Source: Lepidodermella squamata (lineage: Eukaryota > Animalia > Gastrotricha). From it: a DNA stretch of 64,000 nt. A program made the position numbers and the translations under genes. The DNA lies in NCBI GenBank assembly GCA_047495785.1, contig JBLDXI010000024.1, positions 3,596,001 to 3,660,000 on the forward strand. The letters are read 5' to 3'. Position 1 is the first letter of the stretch. Every line of letters starts with the position of its first letter. Of this stretch, positions 3,001 to 46,133 are shown in pieces. The notes below the pieces were generated by a model. The model ran no database searches, was not told the DNA's origin, and was given only the letters and a program-made list of their open reading frames with translations.

Positions 3001-6000
3001 CATTCGGCTACACGTTTAACCGCGAATCGCCCGCCCTCTTCATCGCACCCAACGGAGCCGCCACGGTTCAGTGGAAGTACGCGTCAACGTCGTATCAAAG
3101 CACACTTCAGGCGAATAATCTCATCGGAATAGGCCCTTGGGCCTTCATTTCATTCAACTACAACTCAGCGGCTAACACTGTTGAGCTATCAGTCGACGCT
3201 ACGTCATTCGCCCCGGTTGCTACTGTCACCACGAAACCGCATTTCGAGACATACACCATGTACATCGGGTCATCGAACGATATCGGGAACGTTTTCCCCG
3301 GTCAAATCGCCTGTGTTTCAGTCTATAAAAAATCGTTGAGTCGCGCAGAGTTGACCCAGCTGAAATCAGCCTGTGATTCCTTACTCGGCGGACCGGCCTA
3401 TACCGCCCCGAATTCCGTTTCATGCTCCGCCTGTGTTTCATCCCCGGTTTCTAGCATGGTCCTAATGAGGGGGGTCGATGATTTCTACTCGTTCGGAACA
3501 GCCCTTAGCTACCGAACAGCTCCGTATTGGCGTTTCACGGGTACCAATCTGTATCGAGATATGACAACCACCTGCCAGAATGCGGGTACTAACGGGGCGT
3601 GGAGTAGCCCGGCAGTTACCGCTCTACCCCAGGCTAACACCGTGATGTGCGACCCGGTTTGCGTTAACGGATGGTGCCAATGTACGACGTCGTGTGCCTG
3701 TATATGTTACACCGGCTACGGCGGGCCGGATTGCTTGATTTTGACCTCGTTACTCAACCCGACCGCCTTATCATTCTGGCCGTTGACTTTAGACTCGGGT
3801 TTTTACAACAGCGGAACTGGCGGCATGTCGTACACGGATTACGGTAGTAGGGTGAATCATCTGTCACTTCAACTTAGCGGCGGTCTTGAAGCTGGGCCGT
3901 TCGGTACGCTGGATACAGCTGTTCGAATTTCGTCGGTTCGAACAATCACTAGGCCGTTTGGTGGTACTGGTATTACGTTTGGCACGTCTTTTGTGATTTG
4001 TATGTACGTCAAGTACAACCGGCAGTCGCATGACCACCAGCCGATATTGACGTGGGGCAGTGATTCGACGACTTATGCGGAATTTTGGCTGGCGGCGGAT
4101 AGTGGTCGGATTTTGTATAAAACTGACGATTTGCTGCTGCCGTTGAATGGTGCCACGAATCCTATCAACTCACCTGCAACTTGGATACCAATTGTAAGCT
4201 CATTATTAGAGTTCTGATTTTGGGGGGAAATATAATTGAATACTCAAAAATGTGCTTGAAACTCTAAAATTGTTATCAAAAATGTATTTTTGAGTGGTGT
4301 TATTGAATTATTTAACGAATTTTGCCCGGAATACTCGCACAGTTATTTTTCAGATTTTCTGCGACATTGACCCTTTTCTTTATTGTTTATTTTCAAAATG
4401 CCGATATTGAAAAATCACTGATTTCGAAAATCGATACTGGAAATCGATATCGGTTCTGCTTACCGGCGTATAACACGTGAACGGGCCGCCGATGTCGTAA
4501 AATTTGTGTGAAAATGAGATCTATCGGCTAAGCTTGATATAAATATTGAAATTCTACGGAAAACGTGAAGCTCAAAAAACACTCATTTTTGGAACTCTAT
4601 TAACCTCGAATTTAGTGCTGGAATCATAAATTGAGACAGTCCCCAAAGAATTTTCTATTGTTCGAATTCAACGACATTCAAAACTGCTTCTTATAAATTC
4701 GAATTTCTATTAAAACTGATATAATTTTGGCAAAAAATGGAAAACTCTATTTTTTAATGAATTTGTAATTTTTCAATAGGATGAAAATTTATATTTTTGT
4801 TGTTTCAGTAACATTTTAAAAGACGTTTTATTGGAAGGATACTTAATTTTCACTATACATTGCTTCATGATTATTGAGTATAATGCCGCGATTTATTTCA
4901 ATATTTCCTTTCTTCAATGCTTATTTTTCCAGGTAATCGTATATTCGGGTGGGAAAATGAGTTCAGCCACTTTCGACAATGCGCCAAACGTAGCAGGTGG
5001 GGCTGCTGTGACCACGCCGCCGAATGGCATGGTTTCTAATCAAATCGGATGGCGGCGAGTTGTCGCAACGCCATACTACTCCGATCTTTCCATCTCCTGC
5101 GTCGGAATTTACCCAGGCGCCTACTCGGCTGCCTTAACAGCGCGACACGGCCGAATGTGCCAACAATTCGCGAAACAGACGTGTCCCACTGTGCCTAAAC
5201 CAAATGGGTCGAATTTCTTGACTTCGGCCTCAACCACGACTGGTTCATCTACCGTAACATTTTCTTGCTATGGAGGCTATAAATGGAATACTACGAATAC
5301 GCAGGTATCTATCTTGCTTATAAATATAATTTTTGCCGTGAAATTGAAGTAAAAATTGAAAAATTGAATTTGCTAATTTTTTTAATTTAAAAATATTTTT
5401 TTTTCAGATCTTTTCGATTTTGATTTTTTTAAATTCGTCTATTTTATTTTATTTTACAGGCGCAATCTATTACGTGTTCACAATCGGCCTCGTTGACGCC
5501 AACCCTAACTTGGTCGCCCGCCTCGCCGGACGGTAACTGCATCCCGGCCCCAAACGATTGCTGGCCAGCTTGCCTCAACTCAGCAGCTTGCGTTCCCCAG
5601 GTCTACGCCGGGGAGTGTAAATGCCTACAGACGTACCAGGTTGGCCTCGATTGCTCGATCGACATGCGCTGGATGCCGGCTCAGTGCAACCTGGTCGGCT
5701 TATGGCCGCTAACTTCGAACACGATCAACCGATTCGGCGAATTGATGGACATTGTCAAAGGCCAAAACGCGGCAATTTCATTCGCCGCTGGCCTGACCTG
5801 GCCTTTACCCAATCTTTTCGGTAATTTTCTCGGAAAAAAAATGCAAAGTAGTAAAATAAAGATGTTTCAATTAAAATTTTAAAATCGACAAAAATTCAAA
5901 TATTATTCTAAAATTGATTTTTTTGTATTTTATATTATATTAATGTTATATTATATTATAGAAATAAAATTATAAAATCCTCAAATATTCGATGCAAAAA

Positions 6001-9000
6001 AATTCAAAATTCAAAATTATATAAATTTATAAGGTATTTAAAAAGTTGTAAAAATGTGAATTAATCTAAAATTTGAAAAATTCAGAAAACATTAAAACTC
6101 CTCCTTAATGCATAATTTAATTTTTATTTTTAGGATCCACAACATATACCGTCCCGAATTTTGCTGGGTCTCTGCCCGGTGGTATCACGGTGACTACAAC
6201 GCAGCCACTACTTCAACTTTCATCATTCACAATCTCAGCCTATATTCAATTCGACCTTCAAGCGACGACTAGTTACACTACGCTGTACCCAGTCGTTGCT
6301 TTCGCGAACAATTCCGGCCTAGTTTCATCACCCGGCTTGTTCATATCTCCATCCGGAGCGGCTAGAATGTACTACGTAGCCGATTCGGGGCCGCAATTCG
6401 TCGATTTTACCCTGACGTCAGATTTCGTCGGAATCGGCTCGTGGCAGTATGTCACCTTCGTATTCACCGGTGTACCAGTCAACAACCCGGTCAGCCCTAA
6501 TATCTACGTAACAGTTCGCAATCAAAACGGCGGCGCCATGTACCTAAAAACAGGCAATACAGTAAATATCAACCCGCCGCCAGTATTTTCGGCCGTGAAC
6601 ACGAAATTGTATATTGGGTCGACTGATATGGGCCCATCATCCGCCTACGCTACCGTTTTCCCCGGCCGAATCGCCTGTGTGTCAATATTCAAGGGCGTCT
6701 TATCAACGACGGATCAAACCGTTCAATATGGGGTAATTAATTTATTAGGAATTGATCAAAAACTTAATTTATTGATAAAATCATTTATCAACGCCAAGCT
6801 TTTTGATTTCTCGATCGTGAAGTTTAGTTTTGATTGTGTGAAACGCGCCGAGTAGCAGTAGTTCCATGTGATACGCATGACCTGCCTCGCTGCGTTCGAT
6901 AACTTTCGCCAAAGCTTCGGCGAACTTGAGTGATGAACTAGGCAAAGATTGTCCCAAATTTGCTCGGTTCGGACATGGCTTCATTGGCTGCTTTTTGGCC
7001 GCGAAATTGAGCTCGCTCTTCTGCGGCTGACGGCGTCGCTTCGCTGCTGGCATTGAATCCTTGGTATCTTTTGAAAGCGATACGGAGGTAGATGAATCTT
7101 TGGCAGTGATCATCTGGATTATTTAGGGGGGTATTACGGCGTTTCAAAAATGAGCAGAGTGAAGCAATGGCTTGCGCGATGTTTTTTTGCACTTTGAGTG
7201 CGTCATTCCCGGCGCCTTTGCGTGGGTTCTGTTTTTGTATAATCAGTTGTGTTGATCGCACCCTGGCGGCACCAACTAAAATGTACTGAAGCTGGCAAAT
7301 TCTTTGCGCATAAAAACTGAACTGATGACGTCAGGAAGCGGCAGGTTTGTGACGCCTCGACCCTGGAAGATCGCTGCTGTAAAAATTGAGTGGAAAATAA
7401 AATATGACCTTTATCAAGTGAAGAGAGAAGTAAAGGGGATAGGGAAACCTGCCATTGGGCATCATTTGATGCTGCTTTCTATATTAATTCACGAGGAGTC
7501 AATCCATCGATATATCAAAACGCGGTTCATAGCCATCGGGTTTGCTGAGAAACTGGATTACAAAATTTTCCACCAATCAATTTTATTTCATGTATGCTTG
7601 AATGTTTGTATATGTCATGCATCAGTGAATAACCTGCCGCACTGTAGATTTTGATGTTATTCTCACGCGCTCGGCAGCTTCTTAGTTGAAACATTCCGGG
7701 GTGGAGAAGTTCGCCAAAGAATTTCTTCATATCAGCCCGAAGTGTTAAGACTTTGCAGCAGCACAATGGCCTCTTCCTAATTTGAAGGTGTATGTTGGAT
7801 GTCCAAATTTAAGGCTAAAAAATGTTCCTTGGCCTAGTTGCGAGCTGAACCGTTCTTGTGCCGAGTTACCGCAAATCGCTGAAAATTCGCATAATTCCCA
7901 ACCCCCGCCCAACCCCCTTAGAAAAAAATCAGTGTGATTGTATGCATTGTAGATGGTTTTCTCTCGTTTCCACGGGAAGCTAGCTTGCTAAAACTGAGCT
8001 TTAAAATTGACGAGCCGATTTCAGTTAGATTCTCGAGATGAAGAACTGTACTTATACTTCAATAGGCTTGCAATGCAATGCTCGGCGGGACAGCTCCTGG
8101 AATCGCTGCCCAGGGTGTCTGCAACGTTTGCCAGTTGCCGCCCACTTCTGCACTGGGCATCGTTCAAAACAACGATGTAGACTACGCGGTGGGCGCAACT
8201 GTTGCTCTTCAATGCCCAGCAATGACTCGCATTACCAACGACCTGTTCACGCGGTATCAAACAAGTGTCTGCGTCGGGACAAACACGTGGACGGCCAATT
8301 TGGTCTATAGCTGTTCAACTACCCAATCGCCGGTTCAGTGCGACCCAGAATGCTTGAACGGCGGCATTTGTAAATGTGACCGCGCAACGCTACAGTGCTC
8401 TTGCCAGTGCCAGCCTGGTTTTACCGGGCCGGACTGCTTAATTGCGACAAGCAGTTCCATGGGTCTAGGCTACCCTGTACCACCTAATGCGGTCGCGTTT
8501 TGGCCTCTGACTACTGATACGATTGTAAGAGATCCCAGCTCGAAATGGACCACATCCCTTGCATTGGATTACTCAAATACTGGAGCTCATCTGAAGGTAG
8601 GGGCTGGAACTGGCATGTTGCCAGGTAAGTATCAAGTACTTGGTATCCGCAAAATCTACCTTAAAATTGTTCTTAGGACCTCTTGGTGCTGCGATTCCTC
8701 TTTTCGGAGCCGTTCATTTAAGATCGCGCAGGAACGAGTCCTACTTGTGGCGAAATGTTGGCCCTATCCCTAATCTAGGCGGTCCTTCCGCTTACATTGG
8801 CAACAGTTGGTTCAACACGACCTGGAACGACCCGAACGCAACGGTGTTCCAGACCCCGCCGTTTTTCATCCTACTCTACGTCAACTACATTCCGCAGGCT
8901 TTTAATAACCAGCCGTTAATTGCGTTTGGAAACGGCGGTGCTTCGTTTTGGATTGACCAAGTTTCCGGCCAGATTCGCTACCTACCCGATGATATTTTGC

Positions 9001-40495: not shown

Positions 40496-40944
40496 AAATA
40501 ATCTGCTTTCCCCCTCAATACCTCGAACAAGTTTTGACTGAATGCTGAAATTGGAGATTTATTGTGATATTTTCTGTTTAAACCCGAATTCTGAAATGAT
40601 CTGCTAGACTTTTCGAAACATTTTGTTGATCTCAAATATGATTTTTTACAACCAGGATTTTGCCTCTGTAACGCTATTTCTGAATAAAATCGATGTGATT
40701 TGAAGGAAGTCGAACGCAGACGGCGGACTCGGATTAATTTTTAACGTTAAAAGCAGTTAGCCTAGGGTCCCCAGACTTGTTTACTTTCAAGTTCTCGGCG
40801 TCGCGACGTTTACAGCCGGCAAAACTAGCTCCTGAATGATTCATGAGATTTCAGCTTTCAGCTTAAAGCGTTGTCTCACTGAAAAATCGTCCATCCTGAA
40901 ATTTTGTCCGTCTATGACCTAAATAGCTGAAGGAAATTTACGAC

Positions 40945-43900
40945 ATGCAGTTGTACATCATGTTATCGGTTTCAAGTGAGCTTCATAATTTAGCGAAAGG
41001 CTGGTATTAAAGGGTTGATTTATTGACTACTAACAGTATGTAGCGCCATGGCGCAGTTGCAATGTGCTGGAGGAGTGTATCAGCCTCAATTTTCCTATCA
41101 AACACCGGCTAACCGAAGTACGAATTGGCACTACTACTACACTCTAGGAATGAGCACAGCTAGCCAGAATCCGGGTACCACTCGCTTGGTAGACGAGAAC
41201 ATATGGTTTGACGGGGCTATGTGGACAAAAAACGTACGGGGCGGTTACCATTTTGAAATTGCTAAATTAGAACCTAATTTCATCACAGGTTTTCGACTTG
41301 AATGATTTCTATGCAGAAGTGACGGTTGACATGGGCAATTTCAGCAGTGCAAGTTCAGTATTCGGCTACAACATCATGATAACGAATCCGACAGGCATAT
41401 ACCACCCTCCCTGTGGCTACCTTGCCCATGACATTGATCGAGAGTATGGCGTTCGTCGCAATAGTCATGTCGGCCTGTCAATCTACATAGGAACGTATAA
41501 CTACGTGAACGGGAATCAAATATACCCGAACGCGGATGGTGTGAAATGGTGGTCCAACTGCCCGAACACTGACTACTGCTGGGCACCTGCTACCAATGCG
41601 GCGAAGACTGCATTCGCTAATACTTACATGAGGCGAAAGGCGACTTGGAAAATACGAATGCAGCAGAGGAACTTCACAATCGATGTCTGCATCTTCAATA
41701 CGACTAACTGTACGCGAACACTGTCTAACATTACGATGGCAATTCCTCTGCAGAACTTCGCTCCTGCCGGTATGCAATTCGGATTGGCTACGAGTAACGG
41801 CAATACTCCGATGTATGTCGATGTCTTCTCGATTGATATGTGGGATTGTGGATCCGTGCCGTACACAACGCCTGTAAGTTCGATATCGTCCAGTTTTTCG
41901 TCGTCATTATACTCTCTTACAGGTCACTCCGACGGATCTAATGTGCGCTGGAGGGTCTATACAACCACAGCTTTCTTACCAACAATGGAGTGATTTAGCG
42001 ACTTACTGGAGCTGGTATCGATCATCTAGCCTAAATCAGACTTTAGTCCCAGTAGGCGCAACTCGACTTCTATCTGCAAATACGTATCAATCTGGTTCCA
42101 TGTGGTCGAACGCAGTAGGTTTCATCACCTTCGTTAAGCCAGGGTTTTTAACCTTAATTTAATAGCAATTTTCGCTGAATAATTTCTACATCGAAGCTAC
42201 AGTTGAAATGAGTCCTTTCATCGATGACTCGACAATATTTCCTGAGGGTTTCGGAATCGTTATTTCCAATCAAGCAGCAATTGTTCGCCCTGCAGGGTTT
42301 CTAACATACTCCACAGGGAACGAGTATGGCCTAACACGTGCGAGTCACATCGGCTTCAGTGTCATGGTTCGACCGAGTTCGCTATCCGTATTCAGCAGTC
42401 TCTTGACAACGCCGAACAGTGCGACCTTCTTAGCTGGGCAATACAAATGGGGCAATTTGACGCACTTTCTGAATGACGCCTACATCTCCACGAAAGCTAC
42501 GTGGCAAGTCCGAGTTCAGAACTCGACGCTGAACGTGAATGTTTGCAAATTCGGGACAGTCTATTGCATGAGCATGTTGGCGAATGTTACGATGAGTAAC
42601 TCGATTCAAGGCGCATTCGGTGGGCAAAACATGTCGCTGGGCATTATTGGTTTCAATAAGAACTATACGACGTTCCTCGATGTCCACCAAGTCAAAGTTT
42701 ACGACTGTATTCTAACGACTTCAACGAGTACAACAACTACAACAACGTCAACCCCAAGCACAACTTCGACCACTACGACTACGATTACGACTTCGACCCC
42801 GTCAACCAGTTCAACTACAACCACAGAGCCATTAACAAGCACGACCACCACTGCTTCAACGAGCACAAGTTCAACAAGTACTCCTACTATGACTACTAGC
42901 TCAACTACCACAGCAGCTACAAGCACATCTGCAACGACGTCGACTGCATCTACGTCTACAACTTCGACCGCTCCCACGACTTCTACGACTACCAAATCAA
43001 CAACCTCCACCAGCGCTGCGACAATGAGCACCACACCAGAGACTTCAACTAGTACGTCAACGATACGGATTAACTCAACACCAACATCAGCTCAAACACC
43101 TACATCAACAGCAACAAACTCGGTAAGAAAGTCTAATAGACGTCTCATATACCAAGAGATTGAATTTCTCTAAGCGGCAACCCAACTTCGAACAGTATTG
43201 AGAGCTTAGCTATGTTTTTGCAGATTACATCGACTACCACATCTGCATCTACATCGACTACTCCATCAACATCGACTATCAGCGCTTCATCGGATTCAAA
43301 CTTGCCGACTTCAACAACTCAAGATACCACCTCATCAGGACCTGTGAGGGAAAATTGATCTGATTCCTTGTCATTTAACGAATCTTTTCTATAGTTCCTA
43401 ATCACATCCATAAGTTCCTCCGCGACGACATTCTCAATTCGGAGGTCCACGATTGCTCCGCCATCAACAATCCCGGTATAACGATTTACTTTGTATCTGA
43501 ACAATCCAATGATATGCTACTGTTAAAGGTTATCCAACCTGCTACGGATCGTTCGATTGATATTTTCAATCCCGATCCAGTTACGGGATTTCCAATTCCA
43601 ACTCTCATCGACGGCAACATGATTCCAACAATACACTTTGACGATCTAAAGCCCTGCCCTTACATCAGCCCAGATATCAGGTACGCCACTTCTTGCCGAA
43701 AACTGTGTATTCATGTCTGCTCTCATCAAGATCCCCCGCTGCAGGCACGATGATTTATCTTACGTTGAATATTGAACGATTGAACTCGATTGACACAATG
43801 TCGCGACAAATTTCGATATTGGCATCATTGTTCTTACAATGGTTCAACGGAGTCTGCAGTAGCGAATGTACAGCGGTGAATGGCGAAGACAAGGAACGTT

Positions 43901-44733
43901 TGGTTATGGCAAACAGAGATGAAGTCTGGCTTCCGAGAGTCCGATTCGCCAACGGAACTAACGATCTATACATGTTAGGTTCGGCTTTCACTGAGGATAT
44001 CGAAATTGCGTACTACCCCACCAAACCCAACCGGACTCTTTACTTCTATTGGTCTAGATTCGGAACCCTTGTTTCGAAGTGTGAGCTTCAGCTGAAGAAC
44101 TATCCATTTGACACCCAGACGTGTGATTTCACATTCATCATTGATGAAACTCCGAACTACCTTGATTTTGGCGGAGTTTTTCTCGGCGGGGCTGATCATA
44201 TCACCAATAATTTGTGGCTATTCAAAAATTACACATTCAAGCGTGGCTATGTGAAGTCTTTGAAGCGAAGAGATAGCATGTCTAGCTATGTGAGATTTAC
44301 TCTGACCTTTGCTAGAGAGCCCACTCAGTTTATAGTGAATTTCCTCACCCCTTGTTACATTCTCGTTGGCTTAGTTTTCATTAGTTTTGTTATCGATCCT
44401 GATATCATTGATCGAGCCTCACTGTGCTGCTTCATCATGTTAGCTCTAATTGTGGCTGAATCTGATGTCTTAGGCAACGTTCCTGAAACTTCTGAGCGAA
44501 TGTTGTACGTTGAATACATGCTGATGATTACAGGTCTGACGGGATACATTACTGCTTACGATATGATCGCTTGGATGTTTGTTAAAAAATACCGTGAAAT
44601 ACTGCAAATTGAGGTGAACATATTGCTATTTCCGCCCATGTCAGCCATTCGAGCTCTGGATCTGGTTGTTTTCTTGACCGGCATCGTTGCATTCTTGGGA
44701 ATTAACATTTACGCAGCCCTTATTGCTTTTTAA
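40945..44733 (+). CDS. Cys-loop (pentameric) ligand-gated ion channel subunit with N-terminal 2x L-type-lectin-like domains and mucin-like stalk (~1,105 aa)
   Basis: Exons 40945-40975, 41037-41233, 41289-41873, 41923-42114, 42166-43122, 43224-43343, 43395-43475, 43529-43680, 43731-44733; all GT-AG and phase-compatible, 3,318 nt. Signal peptide MQLYIMLSVSICSAMA. Channel motifs: EVWLPRVRFAN, Cys-loop CELQLKNYPFDTQTC, pre-M1 LTFAREP, four TM helices. AATAAA at 44742. Confidence 0.85.
42715..43343 (+). repeat. Thr/Ser-rich low-complexity coding tract (mucin-like stalk)
   Basis: ACN/TCN-rich sequence encoding TTSTSTTTTTTSTPSTTS..., spread over two exons. Confidence 0.9.
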
Positions 44734-45224
44734 TCACACCGAATAAAACTCCTGAGACGTGAAATTAAAGTTAAAAATTTTGAGATTCGCATTGCTTGTT
44801 TAGCATCCAGGGTCGATATCGACTCCATTTTTCGCCACTAAAAACAGGGTTTCCTTCGGCGGCTGCTCGAAACGAAAACGAACCGGCATTAGAGTTCATT
44901 GTTTTTCTGACTGGCTCAAATGCATAGGCAATATGTAGGTACTTTTCCGTCAACATCCACTCAGCCTCTCATGAATTTTTTCATGATGCCTTTGTAAGGA
45001 CATTACATCTGCCCGTAATAATAAGATCTATAACTGATACCATGAAATTTAATAATCCTTCGTGCCTGTGCGATGCCTTAATTTGTGCCCTACAACATCT
45101 TCTGCCCACGCTGGGTGCTGGTTCGATAAGGAGTCAATTTCGTGACTTCTGTAAGACAGCAACCTTTCATCTAGGGTGAGAAAACCATGGTACAAAAGTG
45201 GCTTTTTACTTCGCATGAAAATCT

Positions 45225-46133
45225 CTAGGCAGGGCATTGACTTGCACCATAAGTTAGTTCCTCTTCAAAGCCGAACAAAGTGAAGCCTCTAGCTCGATGA
45301 AGGGAGTCAAGAGCAATTGTGAAAAACGTGAGAATAACAAATAAAGCTTCAACAACGTATGTCATTGGCGCCAGGCACCCACACACCCTGCAGAAACAAA
45401 TTTTCTGGCAAACTCTTGCAAGCACGGCGTAAATTTTAAGACAAAGGAAGATAAAATAAGTCAAAGCTGCTGCGAAAGCCAGAGCTCGGAACAGATACCG
45501 ATGAACAGCATCGTTCTCCCGACTCAGCGGACAATGGAAGTGCCAAACCATATTCGACACAGTGAGTTCAGCAAATGCGATGAATAACGCAATTCTATGG
45601 ATAACCATGCATACCCCAGACGAAATTTTGCACGAACCGCAACTAAGTTTTGAGTCGAATTTCGGCTTTTTCTTGTCCTTATCGGTAGATTCTAACATTG
45701 CTTCGTCGGCAGCATCTTCAGCCTTTGTCTTAGGGCCATCCTCCTCTTCGCGATTGTGGAACTCATCAAGGCCGAAATTCGGGAAAATTCCGATCAATGG
45801 GAACATAAAAGCACCCAAGAAAAGATCGAAAGCGATGAAGAAGATTTCGTCGTCCTTCCTAGCCATCGGATGAGCGAAGAGTTCCGCTAGGTTGATTGCA
45901 ATCAAGGTGAATCCAATGAATGTGCAAAATGTTAACATCAATTTGTACTGGCATGCTGTAGAATTGCCGAAGTGACGCGTTAGAGTCACCCATTTCCGCT
46001 GCCGTGTGATCAATGTGTCTTTGATTGCGATGGCTATGTAGAATATTATTAGCAGTCCAACGATTAAGAGGAGTACAAAGCTGAATGCGATAACTATCCA
46101 TTCACTGGGCCGCAACTCGCCATCAACGGCCAT
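45225..46133 (-). CDS. Intronless ~6-TM membrane protein, weak resemblance to the Frag1/DRAM/TMEM150 layout
   Basis: 302-aa ATG-initiated ORF with about six hydrophobic segments. LIGIFP, IHRIALFIAF and a late TM Glu (VVEALF) echo that family, but the assignment is tentative. Confidence 0.7.
   Translation of the reverse strand: MAVDGELRPSEWIVIAFSFVLLLIVGLLIIFYIAIAIKDTLITRQRKWVTLTRHFGNSTACQYKLMLTFCTFIGFTLIAINLAELFAHPMARKDDEIFFIAFDLFLGAFMFPLIGIFPNFGLDEFHNREEEDGPKTKAEDAADEAMLESTDKDKKKPKFDSKLSCGSCKISSGVCMVIHRIALFIAFAELTVSNMVWHFHCPLSRENDAVHRYLFRALAFAAALTYFIFLCLKIYAVLARVCQKICFCRVCGCLAPMTYVVEALFVILTFFTIALDSLHRARGFTLFGFEEELTYGASQCPA

Follow-up and report, generated by a model that had tools for sequence, protein, structure and literature searches.

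Does a Cys-loop ion channel subunit with two large, lectin-like domains in front of its ligand-binding domain exist in an animal genome, and is it encoded by one gene? The question is raised by a locus of the gastrotrich Lepidodermella squamata (GenBank assembly GCA_047495785.1, contig JBLDXI010000024.1, positions 3,596,001 to 3,660,000 of the forward strand), a stretch of 64,000 nucleotides (nt) that was analysed as a whole and is called the window below; positions refer to the window unless another contig is named. Open reading frame (ORF) fragments on its plus strand between 40945 and 44733 were joined, by rebuilding from the raw sequence, into nine exons with one stop-free frame of 3,318 nt that encodes 1,105 amino acids (aa). 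The predicted protein consists, in this order, of a signal peptide, two head domains (D1 and D2), a stalk rich in Thr, Ser and Pro, a linker, the ligand-binding domain of a ligand-gated ion channel of the pentameric class (pLGIC) and four membrane helices. We conclude that the locus is one intact gene on which purifying selection acts, and that its domain architecture is firm; a lectin fold of the heads is probable, and glycan sensing by them is a hypothesis.

All eight introns of the gene model are of the GT...AG type, have lengths of 49–101 nt and are phase-compatible. For the four junctions that connect the stalk with the channel (43122/43224, 43343/43395, 43475/43529 and 43680/43731), the chosen ones were the sole in-frame solutions found. 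The first-pass annotation of this DNA had proposed a nine-exon protein of ~1,105 aa in which a signal peptide, two duplicated heads and a Thr/Ser-rich mucin stalk precede a complete pLGIC with its Cys-loop; our rebuild arrived at identical junctions without an in-frame stop, and the layout was recovered both in the gene model and in the homologues described below. The signal peptide of the product is MQLYIMLSVSICSAMA.

D1 (aa 17–268) and D2 (aa 272–517) are each ~250 aa long. Their cores share 31% identity (E 1e-30) and their N-terminal parts 39% (E 2e-13), and both are interrupted by a phase-0 intron at the matching spot, right after GAMWTKN in D1 and GSMWSNA in D2. A pair of Cys residues lies close to the two ends of each head (C20/C263 in D1, C279/C516 in D2), and a C-x6-C hairpin is conserved between them. 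On this sequence evidence, D1 and D2 are true tandem paralogues, in agreement with the duplication and common intron position that had been noticed at first reading.

The stalk (aa 518–721) has 204 residues, of which 89 are Thr (44%), 55 Ser (27%) and 14 Pro (7%), 78% in all, and none is Cys. We classify it as mucin-like, as it is a long Thr/Ser/Pro-dominated stretch in extracellular position, between the signal peptide and the ligand-binding domain; it is presumably O-glycosylated. A Pro/Ile/Asp-rich linker of ~50 aa (aa 722–775) joins the stalk to the ligand-binding domain, and its pattern FPIP.L..G ... C.YI.P.IR.P is common to the window gene and its environmental homologues. Near the stalk end, before the linker, a dibasic RR (aa 706–712, FSIRRST; listed at 43068–43070) may be a processing site, although it deviates from the full furin pattern.

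Exon 9 matched the Pfam family Neur_chan_LBD (PF02931) with 37 bits (curated cut-off 26, E 3.1e-9), and its best matches in the PDB were nicotinic beta, gamma, delta and alpha7 subunits (E 8e-10 and up), with octopus CRT1 also among them. The transmembrane Pfam model PF02932 alone scored 15.4 bits, below its cut-off of 28.1. HMMER aligned M1–M3 to nicotinic beta residues 205–293, and hydrophobic segments are located at aa 970–1023 and 1069–1105. The Cys-loop, which the first-pass annotation had described as retained, is indeed present: C889 and C903 enclose YPFD and align to the Cys-loop of nicotinic beta. With this loop, M1–M4, a Leu at 9' and an acidic residue at −1', the channel part is complete. 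An acidic −1' residue is a feature of cation-selective members of the superfamily, and D999 at this position predicts cation selectivity for the channel. The M3–M4 loop has 23 residues (K1057–R1079) and is short as in prokaryotic members, Phe at 6' (F1006) is unusual, and as we read the sequence it has neither the loop-B Trp nor the loop-C Cys pair that mark acetylcholine-binding subunits.

A search with the exon 9 protein retrieved P0001 from an ENA metagenome assembly (46% identical, contig L001), and a further search retrieved P0004 (contigs L017 and L018) and P0005 (contig L019). The three homologue genes rebuilt from these contigs encode a signal peptide directly before the first head, two paralogous heads of ~250 aa (D1' and D2', hhalign E 4e-4), the same linker and the channel. 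They share 41–46% identity with the window gene over linker and channel; for exon 9 and L001, tblastn segments gave 41–47% identity and an alignment of exon 9 gave 44%. In all three, one uninterrupted ORF runs from the second head through the linker into the first strands of the ligand-binding domain (L001 471–1667, L017 frame 3051–4454, L019 1193–2428), and head and channel are therefore physically one polypeptide. It is chiefly because these three homologues carry the same layout with a head-to-channel ORF that we regard the window locus as one gene. At the place of the window stalk, L001 and L017 have no stalk and L019 has ~26 Thr/Ser-rich residues; with lengths of 0, ~26 and 204 aa across relatives, the stalk is therefore a variable spacer. 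The heads of the window gene and of the homologues are unalignable although their channels are ~45% identical; evolution is thus much faster in the heads than in the channel.

On L017, the fused gene is directly followed downstream by two genes for compact Cys-loop channels (5359–6507 and 6491–6856) that have their own signal peptides, no heads and a short M3–M4 loop; the first of them is 27% identical to the window channel over its whole length. Because these headless channels adjoin the fused gene, the fused form seems to have its origin among compact Cys-loop channels, as a member of their clade and without a connection to the bacterial cases. Upstream of the fused gene, L018 encodes a multiple-LIM-domain protein (1627–2454), which fits a eukaryotic (animal-like) source of the metagenome contigs. 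In JGI metagenome contigs, the channel alignment retrieved only distant ordinary pLGICs (21–32% identity), without head-like ORFs nearby.

Two sequencing runs bear on expression and selection. Contigs of run X1, which is tentatively labelled RNA, were at least 99% identical to the window over exons 3, 5, 8 and 9, at low depth. Three loose ends of X1 contigs (42166, 42016 and 42253) spell the exon 4/exon 5 junction 42114/42166, with GTGGTCGAACGCA joined to CAATTTTCG; intron 4 is therefore spliced as predicted and X1 includes complementary DNA. The depth of X1 falls to 0 after 44772. Joints to 'opposite strands' in X1 are likely fold-back artefacts of low-depth contigs and were not used as evidence. 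Run X2 represents a related genome and holds 71% of the sampled words. Among the best-supported 40 of its ~80 differences to the window gene, 34 are coding (30 synonymous, four non-synonymous), 30 fall on third codon positions, and six further ones lie within 35 nt just after the stop codon. Synonymous differences prevail in the D1 core (exon 3, seven of nine listed) as well as in exon 9 (21 of 23 listed), so that purifying selection acts on both parts in the frame of the gene model. Within 40800–44900, parts of the gene are present in X2 in two versions; thus at 42264–42476 there is a contig without any difference (0) next to one with 17, which suggests two haplotypes or very recent copies in the X2 organism. 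The 38 nt at 43586–43623, which code for the FPIPTLIDG motif, occur in contigs of both runs with different flanks, and thus at least one paralogue exists, probably in expressed form.

As to the fold of the heads, the best model was obtained for the first head of L017. From an alignment of six rows, AlphaFold modelled D1' with a predicted local distance difference test score (pLDDT) of 60 and a predicted template modelling score (pTM) of 0.66. Foldseek matched this model to VIP36 at 1.7e-7 and returned 323 matches at ≤1e-3; L-type lectins take up nearly all of the matches listed and rank above other ConA-like families. We assign L017 D1' with moderate confidence, on the strength of the model, to the L-type-lectin-like sandwiches. 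Language-model features pointed the D1 core of the window gene to L-type lectin clusters (0.94, 163 of 256 features, the ten best all of one clan) and L017 D1' more strongly to the same families (0.95, 180–185 features); those of the second head of L001 gave no consistent family. The window heads agree with those of the homologues in their position, in how they are duplicated and in their strand pattern; they quite likely have the fold of L017 D1', and we infer that the head domains are ConA-like beta-sandwiches closest to the L-type lectins ERGIC-53 and VIP36.

The explanation that fits best overall, to which we give a probability of about 60%, is that of an intact Cys-loop subunit gene whose lectin-like heads are exchangeable binding modules on a cation channel. 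Five subunits would display ten heads, which may capture the channel or anchor it to an external glycan or protein partner. This partner would tune or localise the gating of the cation channel, the orthosteric site of which appears to be without the usual acetylcholine-type residues. In the stalk-less homologues, the heads would sit atop the ligand-binding domain in the manner of the two jelly-roll lobes of DeCLIC; in the window protein, the spacer of ~200 residues would make capture, anchoring or tether-type coupling more plausible than rigid allostery. Fast divergence of the heads, a conserved channel and a variable spacer form the pattern of receptors that face variable external ligands, which favours a sensory or anchoring role. 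Contact chemosensation, tethered mechanosensation and microbe sensing, suggested by the first-pass annotation, would be candidate roles that none of the present results supports.

Several results weigh against this explanation. No sequence link was detected from D1 or D2 to any lectin family in Pfam, the PDB or a set of 1.84 billion representative proteins. In particular, exon pieces of D1 and D2 matched no Pfam family at E ≤ 1 and the heads of the homologues none at E ≤ 10; the L-type lectin profiles (Lectin_leg-like PF03388, Lectin_legB PF00139 and PF18483) were unmatched by either set; searches of PDB sequences with a D1/D2 profile and with a homologue-head profile gave chance matches only; a word-based search with the D1 core found no match among 5.8 billion proteins within the allowed length range; and an exhaustive search with a D1+D2 profile found no genuine relative among the 1.84 billion representatives. 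The single match of that profile (E 7.7e-4) was a repeat protein and was judged spurious. Window heads and homologue heads were not significantly similar in local or global hhalign comparisons (E 0.24–0.8); we claim no sequence homology between them and would link them by equivalent position and duplication. The language-model 'recognition' values (1966–2197) fall below the level that the tool regards as strong evidence, for which reason the pointers to L-type lectins are treated as leads. The AlphaFold model of the D1 core, from an alignment of four rows, was poor (pLDDT 41.5), and its structural matches were at noise level, L-type lectins, galectins and GH43 beta-sandwiches not being separated. 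The L-type lectin fold that the first-pass annotation had read from the strand pattern of the heads is thus partly supported, by the L017 D1' model and by the language-model leads, whereas no lectin sequence family was recovered; likewise the combination of AlphaFold and Foldseek, which it had named as a check, led to L-type lectins with the homologue but not with the D1 core itself. A second point is mechanical: because the stalk comprises 204 flexible residues, rigid allosteric coupling of head to pore is unlikely. Finally, X1 is without coverage at 42855–43402, so that 42114/42166 is the sole RNA-confirmed junction and the four stalk–channel junctions are without RNA evidence, and retention of intron 5 would lead to a stop after 16 codons and to a secreted head-plus-stalk protein.

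The main rival is a protein or matrix partner. In this account the heads are ConA-like protein- or matrix-binding modules, comparable to LNS/LamG or pentraxin-type domains, which cluster the channel or anchor it to cuticle, matrix or a partner cell, and a conventional small ligand does the gating. We consider it a possible account, although a doubtful one. The missing lectin sequence family favours it, as does the D1 model, which matches generic ConA-like sandwiches as well as lectins, and a long flexible stalk would suit a tether. Judged by eye in the alignment of the two heads, D1 seems to lack the Asp of the 'DG' sugar-binding strand of lectins and D2 seems to have a Glu in its place, which serves as a lead only. 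The best-modelled head, L017 D1', is however closest to genuine L-type lectins, ahead of the other ConA-like families.

On a further reading, fast-evolving lectin-fold heads might be the primary sensory input. The protein would then belong to a lineage-specific expanded Cys-loop family of 'ionotropic lectin receptors', in which a surface glycan or glycoprotein (of food, microbe, mate or substrate) gates or primes the cation pore, through direct contact where the stalk is missing and through tension on the tether where it is present. We regard this as unlikely. If such receptors existed here, they would represent a new route by which contact with a carbohydrate surface is turned directly into an electrical signal.

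It is improbable that the locus yields two products instead, namely a secreted lectin-like mucin from exons 1–5 with retained intron 5 and a separate downstream channel, with the fusion being a joining artefact. The X1 coverage gap and the read-through stop would suit such an arrangement, and so would the length of intron 5, which at 101 nt is the longest of the gene; but head and ligand-binding domain share a single ORF in three homologues, the short Thr/Ser stretch of L019 is placed where the window gene has its stalk, and exons 6–8 are in frame and continue the stalk into the conserved linker. Moreover, a channel-only product started from the in-frame ATGs at 43212 (MFLQITSTT..) or 43514 (MLLLKVIQ..) has no signal peptide. 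A secreted isoform that ends in retained intron 5 could nevertheless be made alongside the fusion. Hardly credible is a decaying, non-functional copy in an expanded fast-evolving family, without a working channel, for although the transmembrane Pfam model stays below its cut-off, Phe occupies 6' and the loop-B Trp and loop-C Cys pair are absent by our reading, the frame is stop-free over its entire 3,318 nt, the best-supported 40 of ~80 X2 differences include 30 synonymous and four non-synonymous ones, the RNA contigs match at 99% or more, and the Cys-loop, the 9' Leu and the alignment of M1–M3 to nicotinic subunits are kept.

Features of the fused head–channel gene in the 64,000-nt window of L. 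squamata
Feature	Position	Strand	Content	Basis
Exon 1	40945..40975	+	start codon and first 10 signal-peptide residues (MQLYIMLSVS); donor CAA/gtgagc	gene model
Exon 2	41037..41233	+	signal-peptide end (..ICSAMA) and N-terminal part of D1, ending GAMWTKN	gene model
Exon 3	41289..41873	+	D1 core, aa 77–271	gene model
Exon 4	41923..42114	+	N-terminal part of D2, ending GSMWSNA	splice to exon 5 in X1 contigs
Exon 5, first part	42166..42714	+	D2 core, aa 336–518	similarity to D1 core
Exon 5, second part	42715..43122	+	start of mucin-like stalk	composition; ORF continuous with D2
Exon 6	43224..43343	+	stalk continued	in frame, GT-AG; without RNA coverage in X1
Exon 7	43395..43475	+	stalk end	gene model
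Exon 8	43529..43680	+	linker FPIPTLIDG ... KPCPYISPDIR	conserved in environmental homologues
Exon 9	43731..44733	+	ligand-binding domain, four membrane helices, stop codon	Pfam and PDB matches
Cys-loop	44080..44124	+	C889 - ELQLKNYPFDTQT - C903; C-x13-C containing YPFD	alignment to nicotinic beta Cys-loop
Pore helix M2	44413..44481	+	D999 = −1', R1000 = 0', F1006 = 6', L1009 = 9'	HMMER alignment to nicotinic beta
AATAAA polyadenylation signal	44742..44747	+	9 nt past the stop codon	read from sequence

Elsewhere in the window, an uninterrupted ORF of 302 aa on the minus strand (45225–46133) points towards the channel gene, the two being convergent at their 3' ends; with its acidic/Lys-rich loop and several hydrophobic segments, it probably represents another gene, for a membrane protein. 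The only Rfam finds were four transfer RNA genes at 1921–2427, in mirror arrangement within 500 nt: Gly-CCC (+), Arg-TCT (+), Arg-CCT (−) and Gly-CCC (−).

Cys-loop receptors are among the best-studied channels, and in eukaryotes a subunit is assumed to start with its ligand-binding domain; of the pLGICs with an accessory domain in the literature consulted, DeCLIC alone is characterised. Compared by shape, AlphaFold DB clusters and the ESM Atlas yielded lectins, including a lectin-plus-kinase cluster, but no lectin-plus-channel protein. We found no published eukaryotic pLGIC with the present layout, accessory N-terminal domains being described in the literature consulted in prokaryotes only (PMC12664993, PMC9897478), nor was a combination of lectin, mucin-like or other domain architectures with Cys-loop receptors in the present sense found there. 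The main text of Jaiteh et al. 2016 does not mention N-terminal domains (PMC4795631). Standard domain annotation would miss the architecture, because no sequence relative of the heads was detectable in the set of 1.84 billion representatives. If a eukaryotic family carries two heads of lectin fold, directly on the channel or on a stalk of variable length, large recognition modules can be coupled to the pentameric scaffold in eukaryotes too, and its members are candidates for receptors that sense contact or glycans; homologues without a stalk and the window gene with one together form a natural series on how an outer domain talks to the gate.

Among known systems, the DeCLIC-type prokaryotic pLGICs are alike in that two tandem homologous beta-sandwich lobes precede the ligand-binding domain and hardly any intracellular domain is present; gating kinetics of DeCLIC are modulated by its N-terminal domain (PMC12664993, PMC9897478). 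DeCLIC differs in being bacterial and periplasmic and in lacking the Cys-loop disulphide, whereas the window gene encodes a eukaryotic Cys-loop receptor with nicotinic subunits as nearest solved relatives. The DeCLIC lobes are small, calcium-binding, 8-stranded jelly rolls placed directly on the ligand-binding domain; the window heads have ~250 aa, are lectin-like and stand on a 204-aa stalk. DeCLIC was absent among the 50 fold matches listed for the L017 D1' model, and with the channel nearest to nicotinic subunits, common descent with the prokaryotic N-terminal domains was not borne out. The head-plus-channel layout looks like an independent invention.

The L-type lectins (ERGIC-53/LMAN1, VIP36, Emp46/47 and legume lectins) differ from the heads by a sequence identity of ~10% and by the missing Pfam lectin match, and those known from animals are single-pass cargo receptors of the secretory pathway and not parts of ion channels. 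Nicotinic-type receptors, including octopus CRT1, share the ligand-binding domain, the Cys-loop, M1–M4, the 9' Leu and the acidic −1' residue, but their subunits start at the ligand-binding domain and have a long M3–M4 loop, whereas the window protein has ~750 extra extracellular residues and a loop of 23 aa. Chemotactile receptors offer a precedent for the expansion of this family in one lineage for contact sensing. Plant L-type lectin receptor kinases are similar in concept, with a lectin-fold module outside a membrane signalling unit, although their kinase output is unrelated. The same holds for ionotropic glutamate receptors, which carry an N-terminal domain of binding-protein fold on an unrelated tetrameric output; neither group has an evolutionary link to the window gene. 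A parallel between the glutamate receptors and pLGICs with N-terminal domains has been drawn before (PMC12664993). Compared with all of these, the window locus represents a new domain architecture within a well-known superfamily, encoded by a real, intact and unusual gene.

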